Origin: Monocercomonoides exilis PA203
Taxonomy: Eukaryota; Protista; Preaxostyla
Assembly: GCA_001643675.2 (NCBI GenBank)
Contig: LSRY02000041.1
Location: 434,001 to 498,000, forward strand
Direction: 5' to 3'
Length of the DNA stretch: 64,000 bases
The position numbers and the translations under genes are program-made. Positions 908 to 47,300 of the stretch are shown here, one piece after another. Under the pieces are notes generated by a model, which was given only the letters and a program-made list of their open reading frames with translations, had not been told where the DNA came from and searched no databases. The first letter of the stretch is position 1, and each line of letters opens with the position of its first letter.

Positions 908-2167
908 CAGTCGAAATCGGATACAATCACATCGAAAATAATCAACATCTGTTATGGTCACAATTTTCCATGCACTGACATTTTTTGCTAGACCTGTGCG
1001 ACAAGTGGCAATTTTTGCCAGTAACTGACACAGGTGACCGACATGACAATTTTTTTTGATCAAAACCTTCATTTATTAAAAAATTCATTTTCATTATTTT
1101 TGTGAAAAAAGAAAAAGATAATTCTCCACCAAGTGAGAAAATATATATTAACCTATATTGAAACATTTTATGAATAAAATAAAACTAGAAATTCAAATCG
1201 TGAAGATAAAATTATGTGAAAAATGGGTTTGTGACAAGATCAGCGAAACTTGGAATTTTTTTGCCACTGGAAGTCACTTCTGTCACTGACTTCACTTCCT
1301 GTCAGAGAAGCGAAACTGCTTGAAAAAGAAACAGAAGATTATATTAACTTGTTTGACTTTTGAAATGTTGTTTATTTCATTTCACATAAAGAATAATCCA
1401 TAATTTTTCTTTTCGTTTTCAGAAATTTTTTTTTTCAAAGATATGAGCACAAAACCAACCAGCAAGTATTACAGTTTCATTTTTCGTTTTATTCGATAAC
1501 AAAAACTCCACAAAGCTTAACATGAAATGAATTTTGTTTTGCAAATTGTTCAAATTGATTATCTTATTCATTATAAATTATATTGTGTTGTTTTAACTTT
1601 TTCAAATAAAAAAGATGGAATTGACATTTATTTTTCTCTTTGCATGTGAGGCTTCTTGTTTAAAATAGATTTGAATCATGTGCTCTTTAAAAAGAATATG
1701 TGAAGTTAATTGTGTTTTCGATGTCAAAATTTCCTGCCTGGCGAGTGAAAAATAGAACTTGTTAATGATCATTGCAATTGATAAAGGTTGTTGTTGAATG
1801 GTGTCCGAAAATTAATTTTATTTATTAAATCTGATTCTTATGATCATTTTTTTCTCACTTTGATCATTCGTCTTTTTTAAATATATACTTTAGATATTTT
1901 TCTCGCAAACGCTATTCTTAATGAGGTCATCATTTTTTCTTCATATGACTGTAATCATTCTTGCTTTCGTTCTGTCTTTCCATTCAAAGAACATTCGAAG
2001 ATTGTAAGAAAGCTGAGTCAAATGTCAAAAGAAAGTCAAACAGCCTTAATAGATAAATGAAATATTGAAAAATGAAATATGGATTATTACGAGAGAAGAA
2101 AAAAATCAGCTTGAGAAGATAACAAAAAAAATTCAGAATTCAGAATGGATTGTTTTGAAGAAAAAAT

Positions 2168-2225
<58 letters not shown>

Positions 2226-2419
2226 AAATGGTGAAGGAAAATTCGTGAAATTATAGTATTTTGTTTTTTGCAAGCTTTCCTGTTAATGTTTCACTTCATT
2301 TTTTAGAAATAGAAATATAAAATGAACATTGAAATCTCCAAACATGCATGTTTATTATAATATGAAATGATTTCAACTCATAAACTTATTGTATCACAAG
2401 TTCAAAACATTTCCGTTGA

Positions 2420-3850
2420 TGATCACTAAAAATTGGTAAAATTCAACGATCAATCATAACTATTGTGCTTTCCAAGAAAAATAAAATTTCCTATTTTTTG
2501 TGATCATTTCACAAAATACTTTTTCCTTCATTTTTCTTAGCACTTTCCTTTTCAACTCTTTTCTTTCCTTTTACATTTTCCATTTAATCTTCCGACTTTT
2601 TTTTCAGTCGAATAAGATTATTCATAAAGAAATGGAAACAAACCTCATCAAATTATGATTACTAGTTGGCTGCTGAATCTCCTCAGAAACATCATCAACA
2701 GCTCCGCTTATCAATAAAACAACATCCTTCACAGTTTTACAACAAGCTGCTTTTGACATTGATTCAATGCATTCCATGTCAATTTCTCTGTTATTATCTC
2801 TTGATGCTCGAAACACCTGAACAATTCTGCCGATAAGCCCAGTAAAACTTTCATTCCACAATGTGCACCAGGCCAGGTTATCATTAATAGCACTGAGTAA
2901 CCTCCCTGTTATCAGCACTTCTTTCACTTCTTTAGCTTCTTTTCCTCTTTCTTCTTTTCTCTTCCAATCAACACTCTTTGACAGATCTTCCAGCTCTCTT
3001 ACTGCGTCTCTTCCCAAATACAATTCATTCGTAATAACGTCTTCCAATATTTTTTCTTTGAAGAATCCTTTACCCAAAAATTGCCAAGCAGACTGATAGG
3101 CAAGTCGTGTCAGATGCTGATGCTCCTGATTATATTCAATGATTTCTGTTATGTCAGTCAAATACAGTTTTTGATCCAATTTCTAACAAAAAAAATCATA
3201 AAATAATCAATTTATGAAGCAATGACAATTCAATTATCAATAAATAAATAAATCACACGTCCGACTGTTCAATATTGCTCAAAGCCAACAACGCAACTTC
3301 CACTTCTTTCTGAGCTTCCTCGCTTTCCTCTTTCTTCGAGGCAATCTTCAGAAGGCAAGGCACACAAATCGATAGTAATTCCGATGAAAATCTGAAGTTG
3401 AGAAAAAGATAGCATTTGCTAAGATAAGCTATTTGCTTTTCATTTTTTCCTTCTTTTTTCTCATTTTCATCAATTATCATCTCTTTAAATTTTTGACTCA
3501 ATGAAGATGTATTAATGTTATCAATCCAAATTCTTTTGGATGTTTTGTGATATCCAATATGTTTCAACAACAACAATGCATTTTCTATGATAGTTTCTTA
3601 TCTTCTATCATTTCATCAATTTCATTGAACAGTTCTTTTATGAAAACTGATTCAAATTCTTCTTCATTCATTTCATCAACACTATCATTCATTTCTCTCA
3701 TTTTCTGTTTCTGTTCATCTTCATTTCAACCTTCAAACTCACAAAACAATTCTGCAAAAAATAAAAAGGAAGAGATGCAATTCACAATATACGAATATAT
3801 CAACATTTCAAACCATTGCATTTTTGCATTGCCACATTTTTGAATTGTTA
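2420..3850 (-). pseudogene. Uncharacterised helical multigene-family copy A (FSELE...YHQEHHNLTRLAYQSAWQF family), disrupted
   Basis: ORFs 3253-3576 and 2622-3179 share VPCLLKIASKKEESEEAQKEVEVALLALS and EYNQEHQHLTRLAYQSAWQFL with the intact copies. In-frame TGA near 3726 and frameshifts. Ends approximate. Confidence 0.8.
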
Positions 3851-4180
3851 TATGAATACCCCATCCAGATAATTATGTCATTTTGAGTTTTTCATATTGT
3901 TTTCGTATAATTATGAATAGAAAACATAAACGAAAAATTGAAGCTTGTACGGTTGAAGAATCATCTATGTTTATATCGTTCTTTTTTGTTTTGTTATTAC
4001 AATCAATGCATTCAAAAGAAATAATTGAATTCATTTTCATGTTTTTTAATTATGGATTTCCCGATCATAAATTTTAAATAAAATGAAGATAATATTTTAT
4101 ACATTTGAAATACTATTTAGTATTATTGAAGTGCTTTTGATTAAAATAAATAAATTAAAAAAATGTTTTTTATAATTTTT

Positions 4181-4221
<41 letters not shown>

Positions 4222-4222
<1 letters not shown>

Positions 4223-4267
4223 TGAACGACAGCAACAAAAAATAGCAAGTCGTGTCGCACAGGCCTA
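4222..4267. mobile_element. Orphan hAT short end inside element 989-7336
   Basis: gtgaacgacagcaacaaaaaatagcaagtcgtgtcgcacaggccta closely matches 7291-7336 and is preceded by a poly(T) tract (4184-4221). Confidence 0.75.
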
Positions 4268-5599
4268 GAAACAGAATAACATAATAATTTGTAGAGCATA
4301 TGAAATGTTTGAGATTTCATTTTTCCATCTGGTTCAACCATAACTTTTCGTTTGACATTAGATAATCCTTCTTTTTTAAAGAAAGAACCAAATTCATATA
4401 AACAAAAAAGGTCTAAAGAATGCTCATTGATAGAATCTTTCAATTAATGATCGTTTGAAAATGAGTTAATTTGTTATTTTTATGATTTCATTACACTTTG
4501 TTTGATTTGCTCGTTTTTTAAGTTCCTTCATGTGATGTGAATTTCGTCCTTTGAAAGCGCATTACTTATTTGTTATGAAAACATATCCTTTCAGTTTTTG
4601 AAAGCTTGTTTTGATTATTTGCAAAATTTAAGACAAAAATATATTATTCTAATTATAGAAGAAGCAAGTGACATAAAGGTCTTTTTGAAGAGCATTGAAA
4701 CGGGAAATGAAAAGCAAAGTGTGTGTAACCTCTAAGACAGAGAAATCGAACCAATTTACTCAAATGCAATAAATCGGCCTTGTTTATTATATAAGCTGAA
4801 CAGAAATTACCGAATTTCAATCATTTGAATGAGAAAGATCCAATAAAATCGATGAAATAAGAATCTATCTACGTACTCCAGGAACATGCTGTTTAAAAAT
4901 TTTTATGATTACTTGAAAATAAAAGTGCAAACCAAACATTCATTCAACAGTTCAAATATTATCGCTTCTGTTGCTGATTCACGAACTCTTAGGCTTTTTC
5001 TCCCTGCTCTTTTTTATCTTTGATGATCCTTTTTTATCCCTTGAAATTATCCATCCAAATGTTTTTTTTTCTTTTTTTCTTTTTCTTTTTTTCTTTTTCT
5101 TTTTTATTTTTATTTTTTCTTTTTCTTTTCTTTTCTTTTCTTTTCTTTCTTTTTTGAAAATACAACGCTTTTCAGAAAATTGATGAAAAATGTCTGAATA
5201 AAGCAAAACAACTGAAACTTGCAAATGCATTGGAGCAGCATGGAATGAATTAATCCAAAGAGAAATAATTGGCAGCTCATACGACGAAAGAAAAATGAAG
5301 AATTTGAAATGCAAAATCTTTAAAGATATTTGAAGTTTTAAGTTTCTTGAGGAAATGTTCACAAGATGAATAGTGGAATATGGTGTAATCATTCAAAAGT
5401 GTTTTTCATTTTGAATGTTTTTAAGTTTCACTTCATTTTCTGAAATATGAAAAAACTGGATGTCAAGAATGGCAGAATTGTATTGTTTTCATTTTGTGAA
5501 ATGACGAAGGAAAAAAGATAATATTTCAGGTTCATTATTCAATTAATTTCACAATTTATATATTAGAAAAATATTTAGAAATATCTAATGTTAATTATC

Positions 5600-6184
5600 T
5601 TTTCATTATTCATCAAGAAAAAAGAATATTCCATAAAAGCTTATGAAAAAAAAGTGTCCTTTTCCTTCAATCTATTCCAGTATCTTCCAATAAAAATTAG
5701 ATTTTGTGCTATCATATTTTTCGTTTCTCCACATGTCCGGTTCAGAAGTGGAATGAAAAACGTAAACACATTAGTTGCACATCGTGTTTTCCTCAACATT
5801 CGCTTCTTCATACATCCCATCTGAACGAGCAGATTATCCAGCATCTTTTTCTTCATTCTTTTCTTTACGGACTCCCTCAGAATAAAAAGAAACAGAACAC
5901 TTTTATCTTTTCTTCATGATGAATTTAATGGTTTTTCCCAATTTTGATATCATTTTTCTTCATGTCTTTTCATATCACAAGCTCTTTCAATTCTTGTGTT
6001 GCATCTCTCACAAAATTCAGTTCGTTCACAATGACTTCTTCAAAACTTTTATCTTTTTCAAATCTTTATATCATAAACTTCCATGCTGATTGAAAATCAA
6101 GACGTGTCAGGTTGTGTTTTTAATGATTTTGGATAAAGTCTTTGAACTCCATAAAAATGCAATTCCACTGACATTTTCATATAA

Positions 6185-6279
<95 letters not shown>

Positions 6280-6930
6280 TAATAATAATAATAACAATAA
6301 TAATAATAATAATCTGTAAAGAAAACTATATGGGCTAAGTTTTCCATGCCTCATGTCTCCAAATACCAATCAAAGCTTAAAATGCCATCTCCACTTTTTC
6401 CTTTGCTTCTTTGTTTCCCTCTTTTTCTGAAGCAACTTTCAGAAGATAGGGCACATATTATGAAAAAATTCCCATAATGCGAAATGGTTGACAAAAAGAC
6501 AGCATTCGCAAACATCAACTAGAAGCTTTTCTTCTTTTTCCTCTTTTTCTTTATCTTCATCAATCATCATCTTCTCAAATCTTTTGTTCAACAGAGATTA
6601 TTTTAGATGATAACGCCATATTTTTTTCAACTCAATCCAATATTCGGTGCATCTCAACTGCAACATCGCTATTTCTAATCGTATTTTCGTTTTTTCAGAC
6701 ATTTCATCTATTTTGTTGAATAACTCCTCTGAAAAAACAGAATAAAATCGCTTTCATCAATTTCTTCTATAATTATGTTCATTTCAGCTAATTTCTATTT
6801 CCTTTCGCTTTTATGAAGGCGTTCAAGTTCAAAAAACAATTCTGAATAAAAAACAAAGAAAAAAATCCAATAATAATAAATGTGAGTGTTTCAATGGATG
6901 CAAACGCTGTTTTTTCATTTGGTGCACAAC
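5600..6930 (-). pseudogene. Multigene-family copy B, heavily decayed
   Basis: Minus strand retains family motifs (LFFELERL, VCECC, LLKVAS-like, LEEIRKER, MYEEANVEENTMCN) with stops and frameshifts. Ends approximate. Confidence 0.7.
6185..6313. repeat. (AAT)n microsatellite, about 43 units, at the intron-2 position of copy B
   Basis: Direct reading of aataataat... with two AAC interruptions. Confidence 0.95.
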
Positions 6931-7715
6931 CTCTGCTTTTTAATAAGTCGGCTTCAGAATGAAAACAACACTATTTCATCAAATTATTTGAATTCAAACA
7001 TGTTTGGATAAAATGAATTGTCAAAATGAAATTCCAATTATTCATGGAAATTTAAGTGGCAGCATTGTTCATTTTAATAATAAATTATTAACAATGTATT
7101 TTAGAGAAGAATTTGTTTTATTATCCATTCATGAAATAATGGATTGAACGATCAAATATTTGTCAGTAATTTTAATATTGAAAAAAAAGTCGATTGAAAA
7201 AATTTATATGAATGTTTTCTGTTTTATTTTATTTTATTTTTTTTATTTTATTTTATTTTTTTTATTTTATTTTATTTTTTTTTTTTTTTGGTGACCGACA
7301 GCAACAAAAATTTGCGTGTCGTGTCGCACAGGTCTATTTTTTTGCTTGTTTTTCATTCATTTTCCATCGCATGTTATCACAGGGCTCAAAATATATAATC
7401 ACATTTTTTATTATTATGTGTGATTATTTCCAAGAAAAATCGATTTTTTGAACAAAAATAACAATTTTTCACTTTTTCAAAAATTTGCTCAAATAAGTTT
7501 AAAATAATATGCATTTATGCAAAAAATTAATTTCTTAAGTGAAAAATGCGTTTTGATGAAGAATTTTCAAAAATGAAAAAATCGACACAAAATTTATTAA
7601 TTAATTAGTAATTTTTTATTTTTATCTGTGTTAAGCAGCATCGTATATTATCACAATCGGATATAGTCACAAAAAGTTGTGCAAAATCCGATGTGATTAT
7701 ATCCGGTTTGGACTG

Positions 7716-16376: not shown

Positions 16377-17020
16377 TAAAGCTAAAAAAATAACAACAAC
16401 AAAACGATAATAGATTTTGACATTTTATTTTCAAAATTGTTATTGAAAATTTGAAGACAAGCCATATTCGGCGATAACTTCTTCAGCAATTTTGGATGCA
16501 GCTCCTTCGCTCATTCCATATTCTTCCTTCAGAATACCCTCGATTTCTTCTTTCATCGTTCCACGCACAATTCCACAGAGAAGATTTGCTGTTTCTTTCA
16601 TTAAATCAAACAGCTCATCTTTCTTTTCTTCGCTAACTCTACTTGCATGCACGCCTAATTCACTTTATGTTTCATCCCTCGATAGTTTACGAATTTTCCC
16701 CCAAACTTAAATTGCTCATCATTTTTTCTTTTCTTTTTTTTGAAAAGATCAGAACCTTATTATTATTTTTTCATTATTTCCTTCCTTCAAAAATAAACGA
16801 AAATTTCTCTTTCTTGCATGAGTGATTGTTTGAATGCATTTTTAAACAATGTGAAAGATAAAGATGAAGTTGATTATCAAATTGATTCTTTGATTTTTCA
16901 CCTGAAATTGTGAAGAGATAGGGTTATTATTTTTCCTCGACCTTTTTTTTTTATCAAGACCTTTTTTTTTAATTAATCGTTAATTTTTCCCACAATTTCA
17001 TATTTTTAAAGTATTTTAAG

Positions 17021-20368: not shown

Positions 20369-20424
<56 letters not shown>

Positions 20425-20489: not shown

Positions 20490-20568
20490 ATTTTAAGTAT
20501 ATACATGAATTCAATAGATAAAAATAAATACATTTTGAAACAAACCCAATTTCGTATGGAGAGAGATA

Positions 20569-29535: not shown

Positions 29536-29838
29536 CTTCAATTAATCAAAAAAATAAAATTTAAAGCGACAATTCATGGTTCAAGATCAAATGAGCAAAA
29601 AAATTAAACAAAACATTTGAAAACTTTACGAAAATAATTTCAAATTTCACAACATAATAACAACAATTATTTGGTTCATAATCACTAATAACATATTCAA
29701 AAATGAAGATCTGGCCCATGATTTATAAGAGATAATTGTGCGCAAAAAAGGAAGAAATCGAAAGGTGTTGATACAAAAGGGAGGAGAGAAAATGGCAAAA
29801 CCCAAGTAAAGAAAGAATATCTTTGAGAATAAATAATC
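29536..29838. promoter_or_regulatory. Putative bidirectional promoter between the karyopherin and H2A
   Basis: 303 bp between two divergent start codons. Confidence 0.45.
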
Positions 29839-30625: not shown

Positions 30626-32038
30626 TCAAACATTCACAAGATAATCAGAAATATGCAACAAAAATGAATGATTATAATATCCTTTAAAAAACTCAAAAGT
30701 TTCATGAAGGCTTGTGATGGTATCTTCGTATCCTTCTTCTTCCAGCTTTTCGAATATCTCCATTTTTGTTGCCTTTCTTTTAACTTCTTCCATTTTGTTA
30801 TCCGTCTTTTTTTTCAATTTCCTTGAAACGTGCATAAAAAATCCCAAGCAATTATAAACCGCACGTTCATTCAATGTTTGTCGCTGCACCCCCTCCAAAA
30901 CAGTATCGATAGCTTCTCCTTTCAGCAAGTCTTCAACTTTCACGACTCTTCTTTCTGCTGCTTTTTTCAAGGAACAAATGCACCGATAGCTAATTCCTCT
31001 GTAATTATCCTTGGTTGCTCGAAATAACTGAACAATGCTGCTGAATAGCCAAACAAAATCTTCATTCCACAATACGCACTTGGAAAAATAACAGTCCAAT
31101 GTTTGGATCCATCTCAATAAAATAAGCACTTCTTTCTCTTCTTTTTCGCCTTTTCCCTCTTCTTTTCTCATCAAATCAACACATTTCATCAACTCTTCCA
31201 ATTCTCTTGCAACCTCTCTCGCTAAATACAGCTCATTCACAATCTCTCCCTTCAAGCTTCTGTAAACCCGAAGATGGGTGATCAAAAACTGCCAAGCAGA
31301 TTGATAGGCGAGTCGTGTAAGATTGCGATGCTCCTGATGATATTCAGTGATTCCTAACATTTCCTTCAAATATTGTTCTTGTTCCACTTTCTAATCAGAA
31401 AAAAGAAAAATAACAACAATATCAAAAAGGAAACAGAAACGTTCATACAAAAAATTGACTAAAGTAACTCAAAGCCAGCAAAGCCATTTCCACTTCTTTT
31501 TGTGCTTCTTCGCTTTCATCTTTCTTCGATGCAACTTTCAGAAGGCAAGGTACACATATTAAAGCCAACTCCGAAGAAATTGTGAAATGAAACGGAAGAC
31601 AGCATTCGCAAAGATTAACCAGAAGGTTTTCATTTTTTTTATCTTTTTTCTTATCTTCCTCAACAATCATCTTTTCAAATCTTCCGCTCAATTTAGTGAG
31701 ATAAAAGTTATCAAATCTCATATTTTTCAGCACATTGCAATATCCAATATGCTTCAGCACCCAAGTGGCATTCCCCAATTGCAGTTTCTTTTCTTCAATC
31801 ATTTTGTCTATTTTTTCAAACATCTCTGTCTTGAAAATGGATTCTAATTCTTGTTCATTCATGCCATCAATTATTCCAATCATTTCTTCGATTTTCTGTT
31901 TTTGCTCATCTTCATCGCAATCTCCAAGCTCAGAAAATAATTCTGAAATGAAAAAAGAAAGAAAATCAAATCATCTGGAATTGCGTGAAACAATGAATGC
32001 GGACCATTGAATTTACCTCTGGACGATATCTCCTGCAT
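30626..32038 (-). CDS. Multigene-family copy C, apparently intact, 3 exons
   Basis: Short exon 1 from ATG at 32038, acceptor ttcag|AA TTA TTT TCT GAG, donor gtatgaac at about 31448, last exon ORF 30626-31387 with YHQEHRNLTRLAYQSAWQFL and FEKLEEEGYED. Confidence 0.78.
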
Positions 32039-32699
32039 TTTATTTTACATATTTCATAAAAAAAAACAACATCATTTCCATCCAAATTAAAAATACACAT
32101 ATTAGGATCGAAGAAATATATGACAAATTAATTCAAAAAAAGTTGATAAAAAAAACTCATTCAAACCATCCTTTCTTGCGAAGACATTTTCGACTTGTGA
32201 TTAAGAAGCAAAAGAACGCTTTGTTATTTCAAAGTTTGTTGTTATGGAATCCATGATCATAAAGAATTATTGAGCTGCGATTATTATTTGCTTGATGCGG
32301 GAACAGGGAATGACCATTCTCTGCAGAACTAGGAATATTATTTCCTGTGGAGATAACAAGAAACGAGGCAATGCAATGTTTCTGAAATTCTGTCTGATGA
32401 TTATTGGTAATTGGATGACCAAGGGGAATACAACAATTTCATCAATTACACAAAAAGACGTAATGTATGTATTTTTTATTGTTCTATTGATTGTGAAGAT
32501 ATTTCCATCCGTATCCTCTCCAAAGTGCAGGAATATGAGTTATTGTTGAAATGGCCAATCTCCTCTTTGGAGAGCAACTCGATGAGAACGGAGCTGATTA
32601 TTATGTAGCAATTTGGATATAAATGAAGTTACGTAAGATACATGATTATTATAATTTTTTATTTGGTGCAAGAAATGGTAACAAATTCAGATAATAGTT

Positions 32700-34500
32700 T
32701 ATTAAACGAAGACAAACGAAGAAGAATTTATATGAAAAAGTTGGAGCAAACAAAATTATGAAATATTTTTGTATTTAAGGCAGTGGAGCGGCTTGGGGTA
32801 TTTTTGGACAAGAAAAGCAGAATTTTTATTGCGAAAAAAATCCAGAAATGAATGAAAAGCAATGAAACAGGATGTCAGCAGCATTGACAAGAGTGCTACA
32901 GCTATTTCTAATTTCGCTTAAAAGCCAACAGTTTAGGCTTCGGCCCATGTTTTCGACAAGATAGCAAAGCAAGCAAAAATTGCTTCATTTGTTTTTTATT
33001 TTGCACCTGAATTGCATTTTAAAGTGAGCAGGCAGAAAACTTTTCTGCATCATCTCGATTATTTGAGTAACAAAGCAGTTTTTTAATGATTTTAAATGGC
33101 TATGTTCTTCAATGCTTTCATCATCATTGTATTCTTCTTTTTCTTCTTTTGCTTTTCTGTGTTCCTTTAATGTCATATTTCGTTCAATGCTTTCCAAGAA
33201 AAAAGTTGTCCGTTCGACTTCAATTGATTCAATAATTCGTTCTTTTGTCATAATCGCCATATCTTCTTCAATTTGCTCGAATTCAGCGTTATCAGAGGTG
33301 GTACAAGAATGCGTTGTCAATTGCGAAACATCACATGCGGATTGAATGAAGCATAGAAACTTTCAATGTTGAAGGAAGAGAAAAAGAAGGGAGAAAGGAA
33401 AAGAAATAAACTGAATAGGAAAGGAAATAAATGAAACAAAGAGAAGAGAAGAGAAAAAAGAAGAAGATGATGAAGATGAAGATGAATAAAAAGATATAGA
33501 AGAAGAGTAGGAGGAGAAAGAGAAGAAAAAAATTTCCAAATGAATCCTTCATTCAATCATCGTAAATGTCTGTAGAATTCATGGAGAGCTTTAAAAACTT
33601 ATTTCTATTTGTGTTTACAACAGAAGAATTCGAATTGTCCACGATGATGTAGTTTCGAATGGTTTTGATTTTGAATGATGATTAGATAATTGTAGCTTCA
33701 TCATTGAAGTTGAAAATAATGAGAAACCGAAAATGTGCTCATCGAAGATAACAATGTTGAAGATGAGGCATTCTGAAAGAATCAGGTGAGAAATGATTTG
33801 AAAGGGCAGAGTTTTCTTCTGATGATTTCTCCGTTTCAAAAACAGAAGGATTGAAGAGATAATAAATAGTGATGTCCATTCATTTTTTAAATGTTCTTGT
33901 TTCAAGATGTGGTCAGTGAGTTGAAAGAAGAATTTTCGAGTTTGGTCAAAGAAGATTGGATTTGTGCAAAAGGAAGTCTTGGACAAAGAATCAGAACGTC
34001 TTTTGCTTTCTTCATTCTTTTTGTTCTGCATTTGAATTGTCAGATTTATTTCTTCTGGATTATTTGGTAAACTGAAGAAAAGTGTAATTGGTTTGCTTTC
34101 TCTTGAATACCGCTCATCGCAATTGTTCTTTTTGTATTTCTCATCCAATCACCATTCAATTGAAACAAAATGGTTTTTTCAAGTGAAAAGCGTTTGATAA
34201 ACCACAAATGAAAATGCTTGATTCAGTTGTTGTTGATTCTCCACTAATCATGAAACTCGCATCTTTGGTGGTTGAGATAGCTTTTGCGCATTTGCATTGT
34301 TTGCCTATTTCGAGATGAAACAAGTTTGTTGTATCGCTCGGTATTTTGCTCTATTTTTGCTTTGAATCACCAGTTCTTTCTGATTTTTGATTTATCAATT
34401 CCTTCATTTTAAATAATCTCTTGAGTCATCTTGGGAATAAAGGTCAGACAAGAAAACTGCTAATATAAAATGCATGGCGAACAAATAATCTGTGTTCTTT
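32700..34500 (-). pseudogene. Degraded coding-like region of unknown identity
   Basis: ORF fragments 33615-34148 and 32985-33320 separated by a pyrimidine-rich (on minus) intron-like tract. No motif recognised. Confidence 0.3.
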
Positions 34501-34914
34501 TCTTTGAACTTTATTCGCTTTGAAAAAAAGAATGAATAATTTTTTTCGTTTTTTTGAATTTGGCTGTTTAAAAGTTATCATTCTCTCTTCAGTCAATTTA
34601 TTTTTCTGTGTAATATATTTGCTCAATTCCAAATCAAGTTGAAATGCGATACAGGTTTCAAAACAAATAAAATAATGAATTATTTCACTTATTGATTTCC
34701 TGTTGGTTTGATCAAAGAGAAACAAAAACGTTTGCTTTCTATCCTTTTCCATCCAAGATCACTGGCTTTGGCGAACATTTTTTTTCACACTTATTTTTAT
34801 AAAGCGAAGCAATTGATTTTGTGTTTGTTATCTTTTCATTTAACAAAGCTATCAAAGATATTTTTATTTGCCTTTTATTTCATTAAGTGACGAACAATTT
34901 GAGAAATTATTGCT

Positions 34915-36360
34915 ATGAATAATATGAGCTCATATAATGCTGATGGGTGCACTGGAGCAATTCTGGAGTTGTCCAGAATAGAGAAGTTTTTTGGTTTGAA
35001 AACATTCATTTGAATTTTCTGATTATAATGATTATTATTTTTTTCAGAAATGTTTTCTGAGCTTGAAAATGACGCAGAAGAAGGGCAAAAACAGAAAATC
35101 GAAGAAATAAATGAAATACTTGATGAAATGGATGAAGCAGAATTTTATTCCATTTTCACAAAAGAGATGTTTGAAAAAATAGATCAAATGATTGAAAAAA
35201 AGAAATTGACTTTAGAAAATGCAATTTTGTTGTTGAAGCACATCGGATATCATAATGTCATCGTCAAGTTCTTTAAATTTGATTTCCATGTGTCTTCGCT
35301 GCGTTTCAGAATTGAAAATATGATTACTGAAGAAGAGAAGAAGAAAGAAGGGAAAAATGAAAAACCTCTTGTTGACCTTTGCGAATGCAATCTGCTGCTC
35401 TCTAACGGCTTTATTTCAGAACCTATTATTTCTGTTTGTGTGACTTACGTTCTGAAAGTTGCGATGAGCAAGGAGGAAGGCGAAGAAGCACGAAAAGATG
35501 TGGAAATGGCATTATTGGCTTTGAGTAATACAATGTATTATGTATGAACATTGTTATTTCCTTTTTGTTATAAACTTTTTTCTCATATTTTTTATGAGTT
35601 TATCGAACAAAAACTGTATTTGAAGGAAATCAAAGATATTGTACAATATCATCAGGAACATCACAATCTTACACGACTTGCCTACCAGTCTACAATGCAA
35701 TTTTTGATTCACAGATTGCACAATGACAAAAGCTTGGAAAGCTTGGTTGTTAATGAACTGCATTTTGCAAGAGAGGCTGCAAGAGAATTGGACGAGCTGA
35801 CGAAATGTGTGGATTGGGAGAGAAAATGTGGGGAGGAAGGAGAAAAAGAAAAAGAGACAGAAGAAATTGCTTTGATGAGATGGATCAAAGCATTGAAGCT
35901 TAGTTTTTACAATTGTAAATTGTGGAATGAAGAATATTCAGGGCTTATCAACAGCATTGTTCAGTTATTTCGAGCAACAAAGGAAAGATTCGGAGAAATT
36001 AGCGATCAATGCATTTATCTATTAAAAACTGCAGATGATAGAGATATGAAAATTGATGGCTTGGTGAAAGGAGGAGCCATTGACCTCGTTTTGGAGGAGA
36101 TTCAGCAACCAACGTTGAATAAAGATAAGGTAAAAGTATACACGTCGTTTTTAATGAATGTTTCAAGGCGGCTGAAAGAAAAGGGAGATGATGAAAAGAA
36201 AAAAGTTGAAAGAAAAATGTTGAAAAGGAAGGTTTTTGAAAAGATGGAAGAAGAAGGGTACGAAAATTGCGTCATTGGGCTGTGCCATCATGTTTGTGAA
36301 GGTTTATTTGGTGATTATTATTTGATTGAGAATTGTCCAGATTATTTTGTGTATTTATAA
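34915..36360 (+). CDS. Multigene-family copy D, intact; exons 34915-34993, 35048-35541, 35599-36360
   Basis: In-frame splice MNNMSSY...SRIEKFF-E-MFSELEND. 57-bp intron gtatgaac...atgag. Family motifs throughout. Confidence 0.82.
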
Positions 36361-38085
36361 TTTATCTCCCTTCACGTTCACTTCACCTTTTTGCATTTCC
36401 TTTTTTATATATTTTGTGCAGAACACACATTTACTTGAAAAGACAAAAAAAATAATTTGAAAATTAGATGAAAGTGTTTTTTCAAAGATTATCAAGAATT
36501 TTAAAGAAGAATGAACTTTTCAAAAAAAGGAATACATGATTAAAAATATGAAAGAAAAAAAATTGTTAGAAAAAAAACCAAGCATGTTGATTTTTTTTTT
36601 TTTTATTTTCTTTGCTAAAAAAATAATTGATACTTCAAAAAAACATTCTAATATTCTTAAAACTCATTAAATAAAAATTTCTAGGCTTTCAAAGCTAATA
36701 ATTTCAAAACAAAATATTGGAGGATTAGGAACACTGGTTTGCCATTTCACAGTTCATCTGATTTTTGAGTTTCAAAGTGAAATGCATCTCATTTTCTCAA
36801 ATGTTCACAAAATAATTAGAAATATCCAACGATAATTCATCATAATATTTTCTGTTAAGAAAATCAAACGTTTCAAAAAGACTTGCGATGGTGTCTTCGT
36901 ATCCTTCTTCTTCCAGCTTTTCAAACACTTTCCTTTTCATCTCTTTTCTTTCCTCTTCTTTCAATCGCCTTGAAGCATTCACAAAAAACATTAAAATATG
37001 ATAAACCATTTCGTCGTCTAATGTTGGCCTCTGTATCTCCTCCAAAACAGCTTCAACTGCTCCGCCTTTCAGCAAGTCTTCAATTTCCGCATTCTTTCTG
37101 ATCAATATCACTTTAAGCAAACAAATGCATAAATTGCAAATTTCTATGTAATTGCTCCTTGATGCTTGATAAATCTGAACAATGCACTCAATGAGAACAA
37201 CATGCTCTTTTTTTCGTATTTGGAACTCTTTAAAATAAATATTCAGAGCTATGATCCATCTCTCCAAAAGATTTTCTTCTTCCATTTCCTTCAATTTATC
37301 TTCATTTTTCTTCCAATCAATGCATTTCGTCAGCTCTTCCAATTCTCTTATTGCCTCTCTCTCAAATTGCAGTTTATTCAAAATAACATCTTCCAATCTT
37401 CTATCACATAACAATCTGCAAAATAAAAACTGCCAAACAGACTGATAGGCAAGTCGTGTCAAGTTGCGATGCTCCTGATGATATTGTACAATATCTTTGA
37501 TTTCCTTCAAATACAGTTTTTGTTCGATAAACTCATAAAAAATATGAGAAAAAAGTTTATAACAAAAAGGAAATAACAATGTTCATACATAATACATTGT
37601 ATTACTCAAAGCCAATAATGCCATTTCCACATCTTTTCGTGCTTCTTCGCCTTCCTCCTTGCTCATCGCAACTTTCAGAACGTAAGTCACACAAACAGAA
37701 ATAATAGGTTCTGAAATAAAGCCGTTAGAGAGCAGCAGATTGCATTCGCAAAGGTCAACAAGAGGTTTTTCATTTTTCCCTTCTTTCTTCTTCTCTTCTT
37801 CAGTAATCATATTTTCAATTCTGAAACGCAGCGAAGACACATGGAAATCAAATTTAAAGAACTTGACGATGACATTATGATATCCGATGTGCTTCAACAA
37901 CAAAATTGCATTTTCTAAAGTCAATTTCTTTTTTTCAATCATTTGATCTATTTTTTCAAACATCTCTTTTGTGAAAATGGAATAAAATTCTGCTTCATCC
38001 ATTTCATCAAGTATTTCATTTATTTCTTCGATTTTCTGTTTTTGCCCTTCTTCTGCGTCATTTTCAAACTCAGAAAACATTTCTG
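35045..38085. repeat. 613-bp inverted repeat (35045-35657 / 37473-38085) shared by convergent paralogues D and E
   Basis: ORFs 35050-35547 and 37583-38080 are identical except SELE/SEFE. Identity includes the intron and ends at catcagga. Coordinate sums match (73130). Confidence 0.95.
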
Positions 38086-38155: not shown

Positions 38156-38627
38156 TTTTGTGTTGTTTGTTTCCTATTTTCAGATTTTTTTTTAAAAAAA
38201 ATTGAATGAAGAAAACAACACCATTTTGATATTCACAATGAAAGTTCATTTGATTGGATTGAAGAAAACGGATGAAAAATGAAAACTCACAAAAGATGAA
38301 AGAAATATATGCATTCAAACCATTCTATCTTTTGATAACTTTTTCGACTTGAAATTTCAAAGAAAAAGAATATTTTGTTTTTTCTCTTTGTTGTTATGGA
38401 TGTTTTGATCAATTTGAATGTTTCAAAAGAAATGCAGATAAACAAAACGAGAGTTTCAATTAATGAACATATCCTGTAGAATTTGAAGCATTATTTCCGG
38501 TGATGTCTGTTGTCAATTGTGGAGAGATTTGATTCTGAAATTCCATTTGAGACAAAATTCTTGTATTTTAGCCTGGGTGACGTGAAAAAAAAGTTTGTCA
38601 CGTCCGTCACCAGTTTTCCACCTCACG

Positions 38628-38691
<64 letters not shown>

Positions 38692-39095
38692 ACGGAAATT
38701 ATTTCAAAAGCAAAAGAAATATATATATATATATATAAGGATTCATTTGACATGTTTTTGAAAATTGTCGTATGATCAATATATCCCATTAAAATTAGTT
38801 ATTTTAAACAAATCAAATCATTCTTTTGTTCCATTCAAAGAAAAGGCGTAAAAGCTCAATGGAATGAATGAACATTGGTATGATCATCGATAATTTTTGA
38901 TTGTGTTGTTTCAAAACATATCTTTCAACTTTTTTTTGTTCAACAAAATTAATGATAGTTGAGTTGTCTTCAATTTGTTATTTCATCGTGAAAGCACGGA
39001 AATTGAACACCACATGATAATTTTGCTGTGTGAAGTTGTTGATCTTTTTGAATTTTTATTCATTGAAATCTCCATTTTTATTTTTTTTTTTGCAG

Positions 39096-40399
39096 AAATG
39101 CTTTTTGAACTGGAAGATTTCGATGATGAAGATCATAAAAAGAAAACTTAAGAAATTAATGAAATAATTGTGAAATAATTAGAAAGAATTAGTATAAATT
39201 TATTCTATCGATCTGTTCTACAATTTGAATTGAATTATAGAAGAAGAGAAATTTTCATTGAGAAATTCAACTTGGCTGGTAAAGCCAAAGGGATTTTGCA
39301 GAATGTTGAAAAAGTTATGGAATGAATGAAATGATTTTTTTATAACGAAAGCAAAATTTGAGGACATGATCATTGGTGAAGACAAAAAAAGAAAGAAAAG
39401 AATGAAAAGTGGCTTGCTGATCTGTGCGAATGCTGTCTTTTGCTTCACAACAGGCTGAATTCGAAATTGATATCAATAAGTGTGCCTTTCTTTCTTAAAG
39501 CTTCCTTAAAGAAAGCGGAAAGTGAAAAAACAAAAAAAGAAGTGAAAATGGTATTGTTTTCATTGGACATCTTTGAATATCAATTTTGAAATATTTTTGA
39601 TAAATTTCTTTTATAGACTGACTTTTATTTCTTTTTTTCATTAGAAAATGTCATAGGAACTCTTTTTGAATGAATTCAAAGAGATAATCCAACATTTAAA
39701 TGAACTCATCAATTTGACAAGACTAATACATCATTCTGCTAGGAGTTTTACGATGAACTGATTTAATATAACATACGGCTTGGAAAAAGGCATCGTGAAC
39801 GAGCTGCATTTTGCGAGAGAATCGGAAAGAGAATTGGATGAGCTGAATAGAAATCTAGAAGGAAAGAGAGAGATTGAAGAGGAAAGAAACGAAAAACTGA
39901 GGAGGAAATTTTTTTGAAGAGATGGAAAAATATGTTGCTTTTGCACTTGATCCGTTGCAATTCGTGGAAAGAATTGTTTGTTAGGCATTTTGGTTTTATT
40001 TCAAATGTGTTCCGAGCATCGAGGGATAACCACAAAGATTTCAAAGAGAATTGCTTTTATGCATATTTTTAACAAAAAACATACAAAAGAGCTGTGAAGG
40101 TTGTTGAATTGCTGGAAAGTGAGTCCGTCGATATTATTAAGGAGGAGATTCAACAACCAATATTGAAAAATGGGCTGATATTTCGAAGCTTGAAATTCCT
40201 TATAAATTCTTCAAGACAATAGAAGGAAGAGGGGAAAGATGAAATAGAAGTTTAGAAAAAAGAGTTGAAAAGGAAAGTGATTGAAAAAAATGGTGTTGGA
40301 AGGATTCGATCATTCTTTCACAAGGTTTCATAAAACTTCGTTTTAGACAATTTCTTTTTGATAATTAACTTTCAGATTGTTTCGGAAATTATTCAATGA
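39096..40399 (+). pseudogene. Multigene-family copy F, decayed (hAT cargo)
   Basis: gcag|AA ATG CTT TTT GAA CTG GAA (MLFELE), DLCECCLLL, IVNELHFARESERELDEL, EEIQQP, with many stops. The intron at about 39590-39643 appears retained. Confidence 0.78.
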
Positions 40400-41569
40400 A
40401 TGCTTTTATAAATGAGAAATGTTAAATATTGATTATCAAAAGCTATGTTTTCTCACATTCTTTTTTTTTTTTTTTGATAATCATGTCAAAATTCAATTTA
40501 TGTTTGTGTCTCTTTTTCAAAAAAAAAAGTGATATTTATTTTCCTTCATTTTGTTAATATGAATAATGATATATAAATAATAAATAAATAAAAAGTTTTT
40601 TAACATTTTCCTCATTTATAAGCTCGAAGTCTTTCATCTATCATCTTTTTTGTAAATCACTTTCATGAAAAAACAAATGATCGTTTATTAATCCATCGTT
40701 TAATACAGTGTCTTTCATGATCCTTTCAGTGACCTGGCGTTCATCAAGTTTCCTCACTTGTTTGTCAAAATTAACTATGATTACAGTTCTCGTTATTAAT
40801 AAAATAAAAATTGTGCGAGAAAAAACAGAGCAAGAGAAATATATGTTGAAATCAATTTAGAACGTTTTTTTTGACTTTTGGCAAGTCAATTATCTAAATG
40901 AAACAACAGATAACTTTATTGAATTTTTCATCATTCTTTTCTTTTTTATTTTTCTCTTTCTTCACTTCAAACAATTCAACTACAAAAATCTCTTTTCATT
41001 TCAATTTTTTTAACTCCGCTCGGAGTCCACCTTTTTCCCTCCTTTCTTTTTTCAATGAGAATTCATTTCTTGAACGCACTCAGCAAATGAAAAGAAATGA
41101 TCATCATGTGGACAGACTTTCGAAATGAAACAGTTTCCAAAAAAAAATCGCACAACATCCATATCAATGCACTGCAAAGAAGAAATCATACTTATGGATT
41201 CCAAGGACTGAACAAAATACGAAAGAATTTTAATCACGCATTCTTTTTCTCATTTTTTCTTTATTTTTTTTCTTAGGAAGTATCACAATTGCTCATTTTT
41301 TCACTTGTTCAGAGTCGTTTTAAACTTGAAATTTCATCGTCAACCAACAACGGAAAAAGCTAACGTTTTTCTTTTCATTCCATTTTCAAATTTAAGTTTT
41401 GTTCGTCATTCTTTTGTTTCCTGTGGATGATTCAAAATTAAAATTAATTGAAATGTTTCAATCGAAATATTTATTTAGAACAATGAACAAGTGTGATTTT
41501 TAGAAAGGCTTTGTTCGAAGTGAAAACAGAATTGAAATGGAGAAAAAATGATACATAAACTAAAATAAT

Positions 41570-44390
41570 TCAAATGTGAAGGATTGCTTCAAGTGTTTGC
41601 ATGTTAAAAGAATATCTTTGATCTCCGATGATGTTTTTTATTCTGGAAATAACTCGTTCACAGCTGGCTTCACTACAGGGGGAAACAATTAACGAAAGGC
41701 ACAATCCAGAATAAACGGTTTGAATATTTCCATATGCTGCCAGCACTTGGTAATAAGTTTTCTGGGTTATTTTCATATAAATCATCCGGCTTTGATCTCA
41801 TCTGCCTTTCAAACAGCAGCTTGCAACCTTCTGAGTATTCCTTTTCCATGCCTCCCAAAACTTTTTTTGCATATTTCGAAAAATATGCATCAAGCCTTGG
41901 AAACCAATCAACAAATAACGTGTTCTCTATCTGTTTCATGCTTTGTCTTTCTTTTTCTTCATTGAATTCTGTGATAACAGGAAATTTGCCAGTCGAAAAT
42001 AATTCTTCAATATCAAAATCTATTTCTTCATCTAATTCTGACTGATGTCCATCAAAAGAACAATGATAGTGACAGTGAATGTCATCTTCCAAACATATTG
42101 TTTCATCCATCTGATTATCTTCAAGGACTCTATCAACATCCGTCTGTTCCTCTTGAGTTTTATTCATTGTTTCCTGTGAAAAAACACTTGCCGAAGAATA
42201 ACAATTAAGATTTACAAATGAAGGTGTTGAAGAGTTGGAATTGCTTGAAGTTGAAGAAACGACAGACGTTGTGAATATTTAATTATCTTTCCCGATTTGA
42301 GTTTGACTTGGGTTTTTTTGTTCAAATAAAAAATCGTACATATCGTCAACTGAATTTTCCTCCGCTTCTAATAATCCAAATTCGTCGCTTTCATCATCCT
42401 CTTCTCCAACGACAAGTTTCTTTTCGTTTCTCTTCCCATACGTTTCTTGATCAGTTTCTTCTAGTTGCTGTATCAACAAAAGAATGCCATTCAATTCATT
42501 TTTTTCTTCAAGAGACATATAAATGTGCATAAGCATTAAATGCAGCAAATAAATTAATTTCAATAGTTTCAAACCTGATTGACTTTTTGATTTATCTTGA
42601 AATGCAGCTTGGGACTGGGGTTCATAATCCATTTTATGTTTCAAAAAATGTGCAATCAATATCAAAAACAAAAGTTAAAGAAATTTAAATAAAAAATAAA
42701 AAAAACTCATTTGCAATTAAGTCAACAGGATAAGGCAAAGGATGAAATAATGATGAAGCTATGTGTATGAAGTCTGAAGATTTTGTTGAGGAGGATTGAC
42801 AAGAGGTTTCAGCTTCATTCACAAAGAAAGATGGTGTTGAAAAGTTTCTGAGAGGAAAGCATTGTTTTCGAACCAACTGAATGCCAATTGGGGTCAGAGC
42901 ATACGAAAGCGCTATATATTCACCGCGCGTTCCCACAAAAAAATAATTATGCATCAATATAAGCGAGTTCGCAATAGAGTTTCTCCATTTTTCTTCTTTG
43001 AACTGAACCAGCTTCAAAATATAGAAAAAAAACTCAAAAGATCTTTATAAAATTGGGAAAACTTGACTTAACTTGATACTATCATTTTCGAATCTCATAT
43101 GAAGCAAATGAAAAGGGAATAAGAACACTTCTGCTTTGATGATATCCACAAGGATATCCGTGTCTAATAAATTTTCCTTTTGAATGATTTGATTCTTTTT
43201 CCTGATGAACGAAGCTATTTCGTACAATGAATTCCATCTTGTTGAGACAAAAGTCGGTGCACGCTTCTTCAGAAGGTTTTTCAATGGCAGAGTATGGGCT
43301 TTTTGAGAAAAATTTAGCATTTTTAATTTGAGATCACAAAGAAATGGAACTTTTGTGAATAAATTTGTGATAACCAAATTTGTCAAGTGATTGCAGCAGT
43401 AAATATGAAAAGGAATAAATCTCTGATGCTTTTCTTCAACTGAATCTGCATTGCTTTCCTGACTTTTGAAATTCTCTATTGCTCTGATTTGAGAAGAAAA
43501 CCCATCTGTACAAAAACTTCTCACAATTGTGTTATATTGACTGAATTCATAAATTAGATTGTTAACAAGGATATTGAACTCTTTGGTAGTTCCGCATGGT
43601 GGATATAATCCCCAAAATAATGGTTTGCTGTCAAATGACAATTTTGATACTGTAACAACAATGATCTTTCGATTCGCCACTGATGCTCCATCCAACATAA
43701 TGCTCACTCCATTGTTTCTAATTGTTGACTCCTTATCCTTCACCACTCTGGATTTTTCTTTGAGAACCATGTGGGCGATTTTTTTGCGTGTTAAATATGG
43801 GAAAATTAATGTTGATGATAGCGAAGGGTTACTTTGTCCAGCTTTGATCAACGAAAAAATAAACGAATTCATTTCTTTTGATGATGATGCCAAAAACGAA
43901 GAATTGCATCGGCAAATCAAGGAAATGAATTGCTTTTGTAATTCTGAAACACTTGTTGAGCCATCTGACATTGAAAGAGACATTTGATCTTTGCAAATTG
44001 ATATGGGATCGTATGCTTTTTTGAATAGAACAATATTTTTGTGTTTCAATAGTTCACATTTATGATTAACAACCACAGAATGACTTCTTCGACCTGATAC
44101 ACCGCAGGGAAATCCTTCTTTCGAAATAGGGCACAAGTAATACTTATGGCAATCTTTTTTTGGTGTTCCATTTTCATCAACGAGAGTGTGAGATATCCAT
44201 AATGATTCTCCGATAACTTCAAATGAAATTCGAGAAAGAAATTCATTTTTTTTCGAGGATGATCATACACTTTTCACAAAGAAAAACAATAAGAAATTAA
44301 AAAATAAAAAAATCGAAAAAAAGTTCATAAACCTGGTCCGTATTTCGTTTCGCACTGTTTTTGTAATTTCACAAATTGACATCCTGTGTC
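41570..44390 (-). pseudogene. hAT-family transposase, disrupted
   Basis: Cys/His (BED-like) N-terminus YYLCPI..CG..H....NHKC, SIMLDG (D1), FCTDG (D2), HIYCCNHLTNL (CxxH), STRWNSLYE, and C-terminal SPCSEASCERVISR (dimerisation domain with catalytic E). In-frame TAA at 43045-43047 and downstream frameshifts. Confidence 0.9.
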
Positions 44391-47300
44391 ATGCATTTTC
44401 TTTTTTGTCTTTTCGTAAATATCTTTCTGACATATAAAATGTTAACCCTATTGTGAGAATTGTTGTGAGATTTGAGCAAACAATTAAAACGTTACTTAAA
44501 CATTCTTGTAATTCCTTCGGTAAGTTTTCATTTTCCAGGTCTTCTTCCAACTTTAACATTTTGAGTAACCTGACGTGACGTCACTGACGTCAAAGAAGTT
44601 TCAAAATTCCGATTTTGACCATTTCGTCAGTGAAAATCATGTTATGGTATTAATGATTTGAGAAAATAATGATATTCAAAAAAAAAAAATTGAACAAGTT
44701 AATAAAAAAATGGATTCTTTATTTTTAATGATTTTTGTTTCAAAATCAAAATTAAATTTCACAAAAATTTTTGACTGACGTGAAAACATTTGTCACGTCA
44801 GTCAGGAATCGAAAGGTTTACGTCAAAAGTCAGTACGTCACCCAGGCTTCCTTGTATTTTAAAAAAAAAACAATTATTTGTGGCAAACTTTTTCTTCATA
44901 AAAGCATTAAAAAATCTTTGATTTTCTGCAAAAAGATAAGCAAAATTAACAAATTGAGAAAAATAAAAGAAAATGATGTATGAATAAAATTTATTAAGCA
45001 TGTAATTTTGTCCCATTTGTGATTTTTCAAAAAGAAAGACACATATGAGTGATTATTATTGAAATCATAACTTTTTCCGGCATATAGATTTTTTCAAAGG
45101 TTGTTTGTCTATGGGAAGAGATATAGTGTTCAAATGCAAAAATTTATCAGAACTATTTCAAAAACAAATGTTTAATCAGAAATAAAAATGAAAAAGATTG
45201 TTATAGACTTTTTCATTTTTCAGCGTTATTTTTTGATTTTCAAATATTATTTTCAACCGAAAATTTTGATTGAAGTGTTATGATTCTAAAAATTATCATC
45301 CAAATTTTTATTTTTATTTAATGTTCTGCTTTTGCAACTTTTTTAAAAGACAAACACATATGACACAACAATAACTGACTGAGACCTTTATTTTGGAAAG
45401 CCTGCAACAAAATGGCACTTTTCAAGTGTAACATGTCCCTGACATGAAAAATCTCTTAAACAATTGTTGAAACTCAAAAGAATTGAAAATAATAATTTTT
45501 ATATGCTTGAAATATGAAAAATTTGCCTTTTCCAAAGCTGTGATTGAACTTTTACATAATTTTTCATGTCTCAGTTTTTTTCGATATAATACACCTAAAA
45601 TAATTCTATTTCGAAACGAAAATTTTTTGATTTGTCGAATTATAAACTTCCGTTTTGGTGCAAAATACAATTGATTTTTATATCGTGAGCACACTTTGTT
45701 CTTAAATATTGAAAAAATGATGCATTTCTTTTAAAATAATTTCATTCATTTTGAATTCATATTTCTTTAATATGGGTGATTTTTTTTGATATCATAAAAA
45801 ATTCCGACGTTTGATCAAAAATTAATTTCATTAAGGGTTGCTTTAAAAAGAAAAATAAAAGTGATGATCATACAAATATATTGCTTTATATATAGTTGTT
45901 GTTGTTTATAAATTAATTTTTATTTGTTTCTAATTGTTTTTGCTTCAAAATTTGAAGAATATTTATTAAGCAAATCCAAAAAATAACAAAACTTTAATAA
46001 ACAGAATTTAACTTGAAATTAAATGCAAATAAAATATGAATGCAACAATTTAGATAAAGAATTCAATAAATTTCTTTTTAAAAATTTGCAGAAAAATGTT
46101 ATTGAAAATTAAAAAAGAATTGATTAGTCGAAATCAACAAATAATAGAAAAAATCAATCAATTTTTGACAATAAATAATTTTCATAGTTGATTCACCCAC
46201 TTTCGCTTCTCTTTCAACTGTTTCGTTATCTTTCTATTCTGAATAATGTAAAATTTATGTATTTTACTCATTTCCACACTCATCATTGAAAAATGTCCTT
46301 GTTTTTGCGTCTGAAAATATCATCTCCAATTCCCTTCCCAATCCCTTCATCCTGGGCACTTTCCATATGAATTCGCTCTCCCAACTCCATAGTCACCCTG
46401 CACAACGAGATATCCCGCTTTTATTCATTTTCATTCTTTTCCACCTCCCGCCCTGAAAACAAAACAAAAACAATCAACAGATAAATATTCAAATAAAGAA
46501 AAATAAATTAATACCAAACTGCACTTCGACTGTGTTTTGCCAAATAGCCTCATTTCCACAGCCATCATCATTCCAAAAATAAATCAATCTCTTCATTTCA
46601 GTCTCAGAATGGTCAAATTGCAGCAAAGAATGCATCTCCACAAAATACATTGTATATCTCACTGGAGGGTCTTCTCAGCCCGTACACATTGTGGTGGATG
46701 TCCCGATGTGTTTTTTCTGTTTTTGGCATGATCAACCCCTTAAAAAATGTTTTCAACCACCCAAAACAGTATTTGATGTTTATTTCATCAACACCAGGCA
46801 CAGGAGATATATGGAGCAGAGAAGAGATGGAAGAAGATTATTTGTGGCAGGGGGTGGAAGTGGAGTATTTTTTTGAATGTTAATACTTCGAGAGGGGTTT
46901 TTGAATGAAAGAAATTCTGACAAAGGGATGGAGAAGAGTAAGCGGAGATTTGGAGAAGAAAATGTTGAAAACATATAGAAAAGTGATTGAGGATGGTGAG
47001 GAAGATATTTGAGACAAATTGGAGAAATGGATTTTGAAAAGAAGTAAAAGAGGGTTAAAGCGGGAAAGAATAAGAATATTCTGAAGTGTTTGATTGGAAG
47101 AGGGATATTTTTTGAGAGGAGAAGATATTTTGGAAGAGACAGGGAAAGATGAAGAAAAGGAGGGGATTGATATTTTCTGATGATTTTGAGAGTTGAATCT
47201 AAGAGGGAAATGGAAAAGAAATTGAGAGCAATTATCATTTTCTATTTTTGAAGAGAAAGGAGAAGAAATTGCAAAAGAAAATTAATTTATTTAAAGAAAT

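Follow-up and report, generated by a model that had tools for sequence, protein, structure and literature searches.

The 64,000-nucleotide window described here (Monocercomonoides exilis contig C38:434001-498000, from an assembly of 82.3 Mb in 101 contigs) harbours four elements of a single hAT transposon clade; by their terminal inverted repeats (TIRs), they fall into three subfamilies (E1, E2 and E3). An initial annotation of the window had described three gene-carrying elements, at 989-7336 (element 1), 17021-20489 (element 2) and 38568-44850 (element 3), and had read them as separate captures of host genes. Element 1 comprises two E1-type elements (components A and B) and element 3 is of E3 type; each of these three members carries a pseudogene of a large "helical" gene family in a conserved slot. 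Element 2 is of E2 type and carries a fragment of a surface-protein gene. We consider it probable that the helical gene entered this clade in one early acquisition. A Pack-type capture took place in an E2 sub-lineage, and the E1-type region of the window is a composite.

According to the M. exilis genome paper (PMC8767320), DNA transposons amount to 3.72 Mb and unclassified repeats to 28.9 Mb; no family among them is described, and neither hAT elements nor gene capture is mentioned. The literature library that was searched returned no account of a gene-carrying or Pack-type hAT element in Monocercomonoides or other metamonads. Fifty related loci were retrieved from the genome and compared with the window elements.

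A hAT clade with three subfamilies of ends

The window elements are real hAT transposons. TIRs of hAT elements are short (about 10-25 bp) and classically start with YARNG. Those of the present clade are 14-16 bp long and begin TAGAC, TAAAC or TAAGC, base five being C, not G. All six element ends proposed initially were found in place, and the TIR consensus TARRCCTGKGYGAC has seven matches in the window at no more than one mismatch (0.02 expected by chance) and 169 exact matches genome-wide, versus 22 for a reversed control. Exact TIR sites of the subfamilies number 65 for E1 (TIR TAGACCTGTGCGAC; control 0), 42 for E2 (TIR TAAACCTGTGTGACGT, pattern TAAACCTGTGTGAC; control 14) and 28 for E3 (family TIR TAAGCCTGGGTGACGT, pattern AGCCTGGGTGACGT; control 0). 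The subterminal TGAC(G) motifs that had been noticed are also genuine, with up to 8 in 150 bp, at element 3's right end, compared to a window mean of 0.3.

Target-site duplications (TSDs) support the same conclusion. Among the loci retrieved, 33 elements from the three subfamilies have perfect 8-bp TSDs, mutually different except in one pair of segmental duplicates. This pair, L045 (C62:205835-209167) and L046 (C62:222447-225757), consists of helical-carrying E2-type elements 16.6 kb apart with the same TSD, GTAACAAC, and is a segmental duplication rather than two insertions. Individual TSDs had been claimed for all three window elements; those of elements 2 and 3 are perfect, while the right copy for element 1 lies one T further out. 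Two MITE-sized (miniature inverted-repeat transposable element) loci with E1-type TIRs were also seen, L035 (C47:1896985-1897319, 335 bp), which has a perfect TSD, and L027 (C18:791849-792204, 356 bp), which has none.

The motifs CxxH, (T)RWNS and a C-terminal S..ER.(F/I)S are diagnostic of hAT transposases. This core is present in the translated transposases of the clade as CCNH, TFVSTRWNS and SEASCERVIS and, together with the 8-bp TSDs, bears out the assignment to hAT. The three motifs are conserved among copies of 72-97% amino-acid identity, and CMNH and TFVSTRWS can be read in the transposase of L036, an autonomous E1-type element of 8.2 kb whose transposase is 38% identical to that of E3.

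Element 3 (38568-44850, + strand, 6283 bp) is a dead autonomous E3-type copy with a passenger gene. It is flanked by perfect copies of the TSD CTTGTATT (38560-38567 and 44851-44858), and its tips have one or two bases mutated relative to the family TIR. Full-length copies elsewhere are 95% and 83% identical, each with its own TSD, and a further copy, again with its own TSD, consists of two parts (96% and 91%) separated by an insertion of ∼1.9 kb. The helical pseudogene (39177-40288, + strand) starts ∼0.5 kb inside the left end and has several in-frame stops. The transposase gene (41570-44250, - strand) is broken by stops at 43045-43047 and 42279-42281 and by a +1 insertion near 41757; these three lesions are private, being present in none of the four other aligned copies. 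Over its 363-codon core, comparisons between E3 sub-lineages give a ratio of nonsynonymous to synonymous substitution rates (dN/dS) of 0.18-0.21 in frame versus 0.9-1.0 out of frame, showing that the transposase has been under selection.

The 363-residue open reading frame (ORF) had no match in a word-indexed protein search or against PDB sequences, and only an exhaustive profile search succeeded: a catalytic-core profile retrieved 156 relatives from 1.84 billion representative proteins. The C-terminal hAT dimerisation domain (PF05699) matches the window transposase with E = 0.0017 and 18.6 bits, below the Pfam cut-off of 21.4 bits, and scores above that cut-off (26-30 bits) in three of ten scanned relatives. 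In the copies L010 and L011 (contigs C14 and C47), the transposase is encoded by ORFs of 528 and 366 residues with 13 bases of T-rich sequence between them. Together these are of about the size of the intronless relatives of 850-1000 residues found on ENA metagenome contigs of ∼40% GC (L051 and L052), the source of which is presumably other protists. A further E3-type locus, L049 (C80:1563628-1570923, 7.3 kb), has two left ends facing each other with a helical copy in each arm; its flanks (ATTTTTAT and ATAAAAAT) are reverse complements of one another, and it is an inverted duplication rather than a normal element.

A helical gene in a conserved slot

The helical gene encodes a protein of ∼430 residues, for which the AlphaFold model is all-helical with a mean predicted local distance difference test score (pLDDT) of 82. 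A Pfam scan of the protein gave no domain match. The best PDB matches of the model point to an armadillo-like fold, an alpha-solenoid of three-helix repeats; they are designed armadillo proteins, importin-alpha and beta-catenin, although these are weak (template modelling scores of 0.35-0.4, E about 1e-3). Exon 2 has at least 209 protein matches, all of them uncharacterised MONOS_ proteins of M. exilis. Exons 1 and 2 were searched separately, and spliced models were never joined for searches.

The position of this gene within the elements is highly constant. All complete E1-type elements with a length of 2.8 kb or more (22, counting component A) have a helical copy that is directed inward, 0.5-0.7 kb from one of their ends. 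The same slot is used in the truncated component B, in the E3-type elements that reach that end and in four E2-type elements. L036 has an identical layout with a helical gene, despite the divergence of its transposase. The carried copies are pseudogenes decaying as passengers: in-frame stops or frameshifts were found in every hAT-borne copy examined, including those beside the transposases of L010 and L011. They retain a two-exon layout, in that exons 1 and 2 match as separate pieces in the order of the family. Intron retention had been taken initially as a sign of capture at the DNA level, and the layout fits such an origin. The hAT-borne and free copies share homology no further than the coding region. 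Outside M. exilis, the closest relatives of the transposase are on metagenome contigs of 4-5 kb, and these contigs have no helical homologue.

Free helical genes are abundant, with 1746 first-look loci genome-wide. The 150 best-scored exon-1 matches all have E below 1e-42, and 144 of them lack a stop. Checked against every exact TIR site listed for the genome, not one of these 150 fell between the two TIRs of a pair. Three free genes in the window served as a comparison set (30629-31943, - strand; 35050-36360, + strand; 36797-38080, - strand), and no TIR-like sequence was found near them (30629-38083). The first exons of the convergent pair at 35050-38080 are 99% identical. Free helical genes often form inverted pairs 3-8 kb apart elsewhere, as at 643848/647230 on contig C34, 1218500/1226054 on C7 and 1580533/1584348 on C2.

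Element 2 is a Pack-type hAT element

Element 2 (17021-20489, + strand, 3469 bp) is a genuine Pack-type hAT: it has hAT ends and a TSD, lacks a transposase, and has an interior derived from a host gene fragment. It is a non-autonomous E2-type element bounded by a perfect 15-bp TIR, TAAACCTGTGTGACG, and by perfect copies of the TSD ATTTTAAG (17013-17020 and 20490-20497), and no transposase homology was found in it. Its positions 1366-2810 (window 18386-19830, - strand) match dozens of genomic loci at ∼80% and correspond to a fragment of ∼1.45 kb from a giant beta-helix surface-protein gene. Free members of this gene family mostly have open frames of 2500-3100 residues, compared to ∼480 codons in the piece carried by the elements, and the presence of a surface-gene fragment, as originally proposed, is borne out. 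An ORF remnant (18230-19198) extends from the fragment into element-specific sequence.

By our coordinate comparison, the surface fragment is oriented inward and lies ∼0.6 kb from the same end, in the place that the helical gene has in sister E2 elements. Element 2 and the helical-carrying E2-type elements have only ∼60-120 bp in common at each end. Twelve complete retrieved elements contain the surface fragment or shortened versions of it, the older copies having gained stops, and further ones likely exist, judging by short open frames beside E2-type TIR sites. Four E2 relatives, L006-L009, have longer cargo; L006 (C47:2085500-2091488), which contains the surface fragment, is nested in an E3-like autonomous element of 75% divergence, the end of which reads CAAGCCCTGGGTGACGT and represents another TIR variant.

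Copies of element 2 elsewhere are 99.7% and 98% identical, each with its own TSD. The closer copy (L001, a 3.47-kb element just upstream of the window) is inverted relative to element 2, has another TSD and lies 21 kb upstream, which fits recent local transposition. The initial annotation had proposed looking for the same cargo at different insertion sites, and it does recur in this way for elements 2 and 3. Since other copies of both have the same cargo with different TSDs, these two elements moved as whole units, as had been supposed for all three; element 1 is a unique composite (see below).

The reconstructed empty site of element 2 has 14 other occurrences in the genome at no more than three mismatches, versus none for a control, and each has a single copy of the target. 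Insertion was therefore precise, because the target is uninterrupted at these 14 paralogous sites. A dispersed repeat of at least 15 copies surrounds the element, and public contigs are 30-100 times deeper on its right flank (20482-20952). Some public contigs have joints that bypass element 2 and contain small inserts of variable sequence; a reading of these joints as excision footprints or an empty allele was considered and rejected. The 14 paralogous repeat copies explain them, leaving somatic excision of element 2 unsupported. The sequencing runs considered were all of DNA from a single sample.

Element 1 is a composite of two E1-type elements

The region 989-7336 is not the single element it was first taken for, as a third TIR at 4254-4267 (- strand) divides it into a complete and a truncated element. 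Component A (989-4267, + strand, 3279 bp) is a complete non-autonomous E1-type element with TIRs at 989-1002 (+) and 4254-4267 (-), and aligns over its full length at 70% identity with L020, a complete element with its own TSD on contig C50. Component B (4268-7336, + strand) lacks the first ∼494 bp of an E1-type element and retains the right TIR (7323-7336). It is ∼90% identical to three complete elements of 3.45-3.9 kb (L017-L019), starting from their position ∼494. The right TIR of component A directly adjoins component B, and the two are in the same orientation with one outer TSD in common. The left copy of this TSD, TTTTTTGC, is at 981-988, and the same 8-mer recurs at 7338-7345 after one extra T, a displacement that is a slip in a T-run.

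Two helical copies had been reported in element 1. Both are present, one per component, and both are pseudogenes. That of component A (2502-3758, - strand) has both exons, with a frame change near 3588 and an exon-2 ORF that stops at 2622 while homology continues to ∼2514. That of component B (5949-6848, - strand) is degenerate. Because the same whole-gene passenger is found in autonomous relatives such as L036, the components are deletion derivatives, not fresh captures. The kinds of cargo originally listed, namely helical copies, a surface-gene fragment and a family copy beside a hAT transposase, are all as stated, though as pseudogenes or fragments and not as intact genes.

The composite may have originated when a complete E1 element came to sit within a second E1 element, whose first ∼494 bp were then lost. 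This could have involved insertion of the inner element followed by transposition of both by means of the outer pair of ends. Alternatively, the first 494 bp could have been deleted in place by recombination between the two left ends, which resemble each other (79% identity over 134 bp). The manner of formation is inferred, and end-recombination accounts for 989-7336 equally well as outer-end transposition. No second copy of the composite that would support its movement as one unit was found in the genome. Internal "end-like" repeats of element 1 (element positions 1170-1241, 3188-3237 and 6227-6302) were examined and dismissed as A/T-rich simple sequence.

One acquisition or several

The helical gene is best read as one old acquisition, because it occupies the same slot in the same orientation in three subfamilies and because the approximately unbiased (AU) test does not reject a tree that unites the hAT-borne copies in one clade (p = 0.21). 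The sharing of slot and orientation among three subfamilies, including two autonomous lineages with transposases 38% identical, does not support the original view of separate host-gene captures. Both the single acquisition and its direction, from host to transposon, are what we infer from this pattern. The ancestral element would have consisted of a TIR, ∼0.5 kb of sequence, a complete two-exon helical gene pointing inward, a transposase gene on the opposite strand and the other TIR. The helical gene would have been taken up once, at the DNA level, early in the clade, and would have been inherited since, decaying in every copy. Non-autonomous derivatives of 3-3.5 kb would have lost the transposase, kept the ends and passenger, and been mobilised in trans by cut-and-paste, creating 8-bp duplications. 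One E2 sub-lineage took up the ∼1.45-kb surface-gene fragment, which occupies the helical slot of its E2 relatives, and then multiplied.

Several observations weigh against this account. In the best maximum-likelihood (ML) tree, obtained by a quick method from concatenated tblastn pieces with X in place of stops, hAT-borne copies are scattered among free ones with 15 label changes, and E2-type copies are placed beside the free gene at 30629 with 97 in the Shimodaira–Hasegawa-like approximate likelihood ratio test (SH-aLRT). This scatter could reflect repeated capture or gene conversion, although the backbone of the tree lacks resolution and the pseudogene branches are long. Between E3 sub-lineages, two of three helical segments have a dN/dS of 0.32-0.45 versus 0.6-0.75 for non-coding controls, a result that is ambiguous once off-frame and non-coding controls are included, and the stops are mostly confined to one copy or a few closely related ones. 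Because of the lowered dN/dS and the mostly private stops, some selection may have acted on the gene during its time in the element. In comparisons of E1 sub-lineages, the helical region can be aligned (∼66%) and the adjoining non-coding DNA cannot, which is unexpected for a long-dead passenger. Finally, the absence of TIRs near free copies refers to exact TIR matches and to the three window genes.

One alternative, the original reading, is repeated independent transduplication, in which each hAT lineage caught a different helical member in an ongoing shuffling of genes like that of Pack-MULEs. The ML tree distributes the hAT-borne copies over at least eight clusters among free genes, several of them paired at SH-aLRT 86-97; the cargo of component A is 77% identical to a free locus, versus 70% between full-length component A and its nearest element; and the E2 lineage does show differing interiors between the same ends. 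Repeated capture would, however, have had to deliver a whole gene each time, in one orientation and at one distance (0.5-0.7 kb) from the same end, across three subfamilies, whereas Pack-type captures are normally fragments at varied positions. Given also the outcome of the AU test, the weak backbone and the long pseudogene branches, we regard repeated capture as rather unlikely. A second alternative is that the helical gene is a native accessory gene of the hAT clade, with the large "host" family representing copies without ends or domesticated ones. In its favour, the slot is conserved across lineages with transposases 38% identical, the in-frame dN/dS is somewhat under the non-coding controls in two of three segments with mostly private stops, and the family is lineage-specific and extremely large (1746 first-look loci). 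Against a native gene, L010 and L011 have the best-preserved transposase ORFs and yet broken helical genes, the nearest foreign transposase relatives are without a helical gene on their contigs, the 150 best free exon-1 matches all lie outside exact TIR pairs and no TIR-like sequence accompanies the three free window genes, and homology to free copies ends at the coding region. On balance this origin appears quite improbable to us.

A further reading, which we would call unlikely, is a two-gene hAT lineage in which the helical gene was long a working accessory, or in which a dedicated slot is renewed again and again from the host by conversion or capture; the family, of hundreds to about 1700 loci, would then be tied in its evolution to the clade, and the clade may still be active. 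Signs of possible activity are the apparently whole transposase ORFs in other copies and the two copies of element 2 that are 21 kb apart and 99.7% identical. An active clade would offer a native transposon tool for an amitochondriate eukaryote. The most skeptical explanation, by which AT-rich DNA has yielded inverted repeats by chance or an artefact of assembly, could appeal to the AT-rich flanks and to the location of the element 1 TSD within a T-run. Its probability is negligible in view of the seven TIR matches in the window against 0.02 expected, the dozens of copies with distinct perfect TSDs, the paralogous empty sites of element 2 and the selection on the transposase; the copy census already refutes it. 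The reading that we favour remains a hAT clade with one early helical acquisition.

Element-borne copies and the size of the host families

The initial annotation had suggested that hAT transduplication expands the helical and surface-protein families, and this is not supported. Each of the two host families greatly outnumbers the elements, and no helical match among the best 150 for exon 1 falls within an exact TIR pair; on this indirect test of enrichment, hAT elements appear not to be the driver of family growth. The surface family likewise consists mostly of genes of 2500-3100 residues, versus the ∼480 codons held by elements. The results speak against transposons as builders of these families. 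They also indicate that, in two lineage-specific families of very large size, some predicted members are pseudogenes or fragments borne by transposons; these should be masked when members are counted.

Comparison with known gene-carrying hAT elements

Gene-carrying and Pack-type hAT elements are already known from maize and fungi. The Pack-TYPE transposons of plants include Pack-hAT elements annotated in maize (Gisby and Catoni 2022, PMC8903248). Like these, element 2 is non-autonomous, with hAT ends, an 8-bp TSD, no transposase and a host-gene-fragment interior, and it was amplified along with that fragment. It differs in its metamonad host, in the one fragment type seen in its lineage, and in having made the capture in a slot that its sisters use for another gene. 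Elements 1 and 3 are unlike Pack-hAT: their cargo is a copy of a whole gene that came down from an autonomous ancestor, and in element 3 a transposase is encoded as well.

Also comparable are fungal hAT elements of Pyrenophora, Pseudocercospora and Cercospora in which a complete histone H3 gene was captured and then amplified (Dhillon et al. 2019, PMC6710886). In both systems, a complete element with host-derived coding sequence beside its transposase spread to many copies, with inactivation of the amplified copies but not of the host's own, which stay intact. In contrast to the fungal elements, the source in M. exilis is not a housekeeping gene but a multigene family that is specific to the lineage and has hundreds of members, decay proceeded by ordinary mutation and not through RIP (repeat-induced point mutation), and the carried gene persists over three TIR subfamilies with deeply diverged transposases.

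Nested and composite elements of the Ac/Ds type, and transposition using alternative ends, occur in maize. Element 1 resembles such composites in that two elements of the same family are in direct orientation with one outer TSD, as the use of outer ends would yield. However, it is unique, and a deletion by left-end recombination explains it equally well. Gene-carrying and Pack-type hAT elements occur beyond plants and fungi, and a curated hAT clade of M. exilis is now defined by its ends, TSDs, and autonomous and non-autonomous members.

Other features of the window

Two long reading frames lie outside the hAT elements. The region 55294-63945 (- strand) is a single ORF of 2883 residues, and 25330-29541 (- strand) is a single ORF of 1403 residues with weak matches to importin-beta/HEAT proteins.

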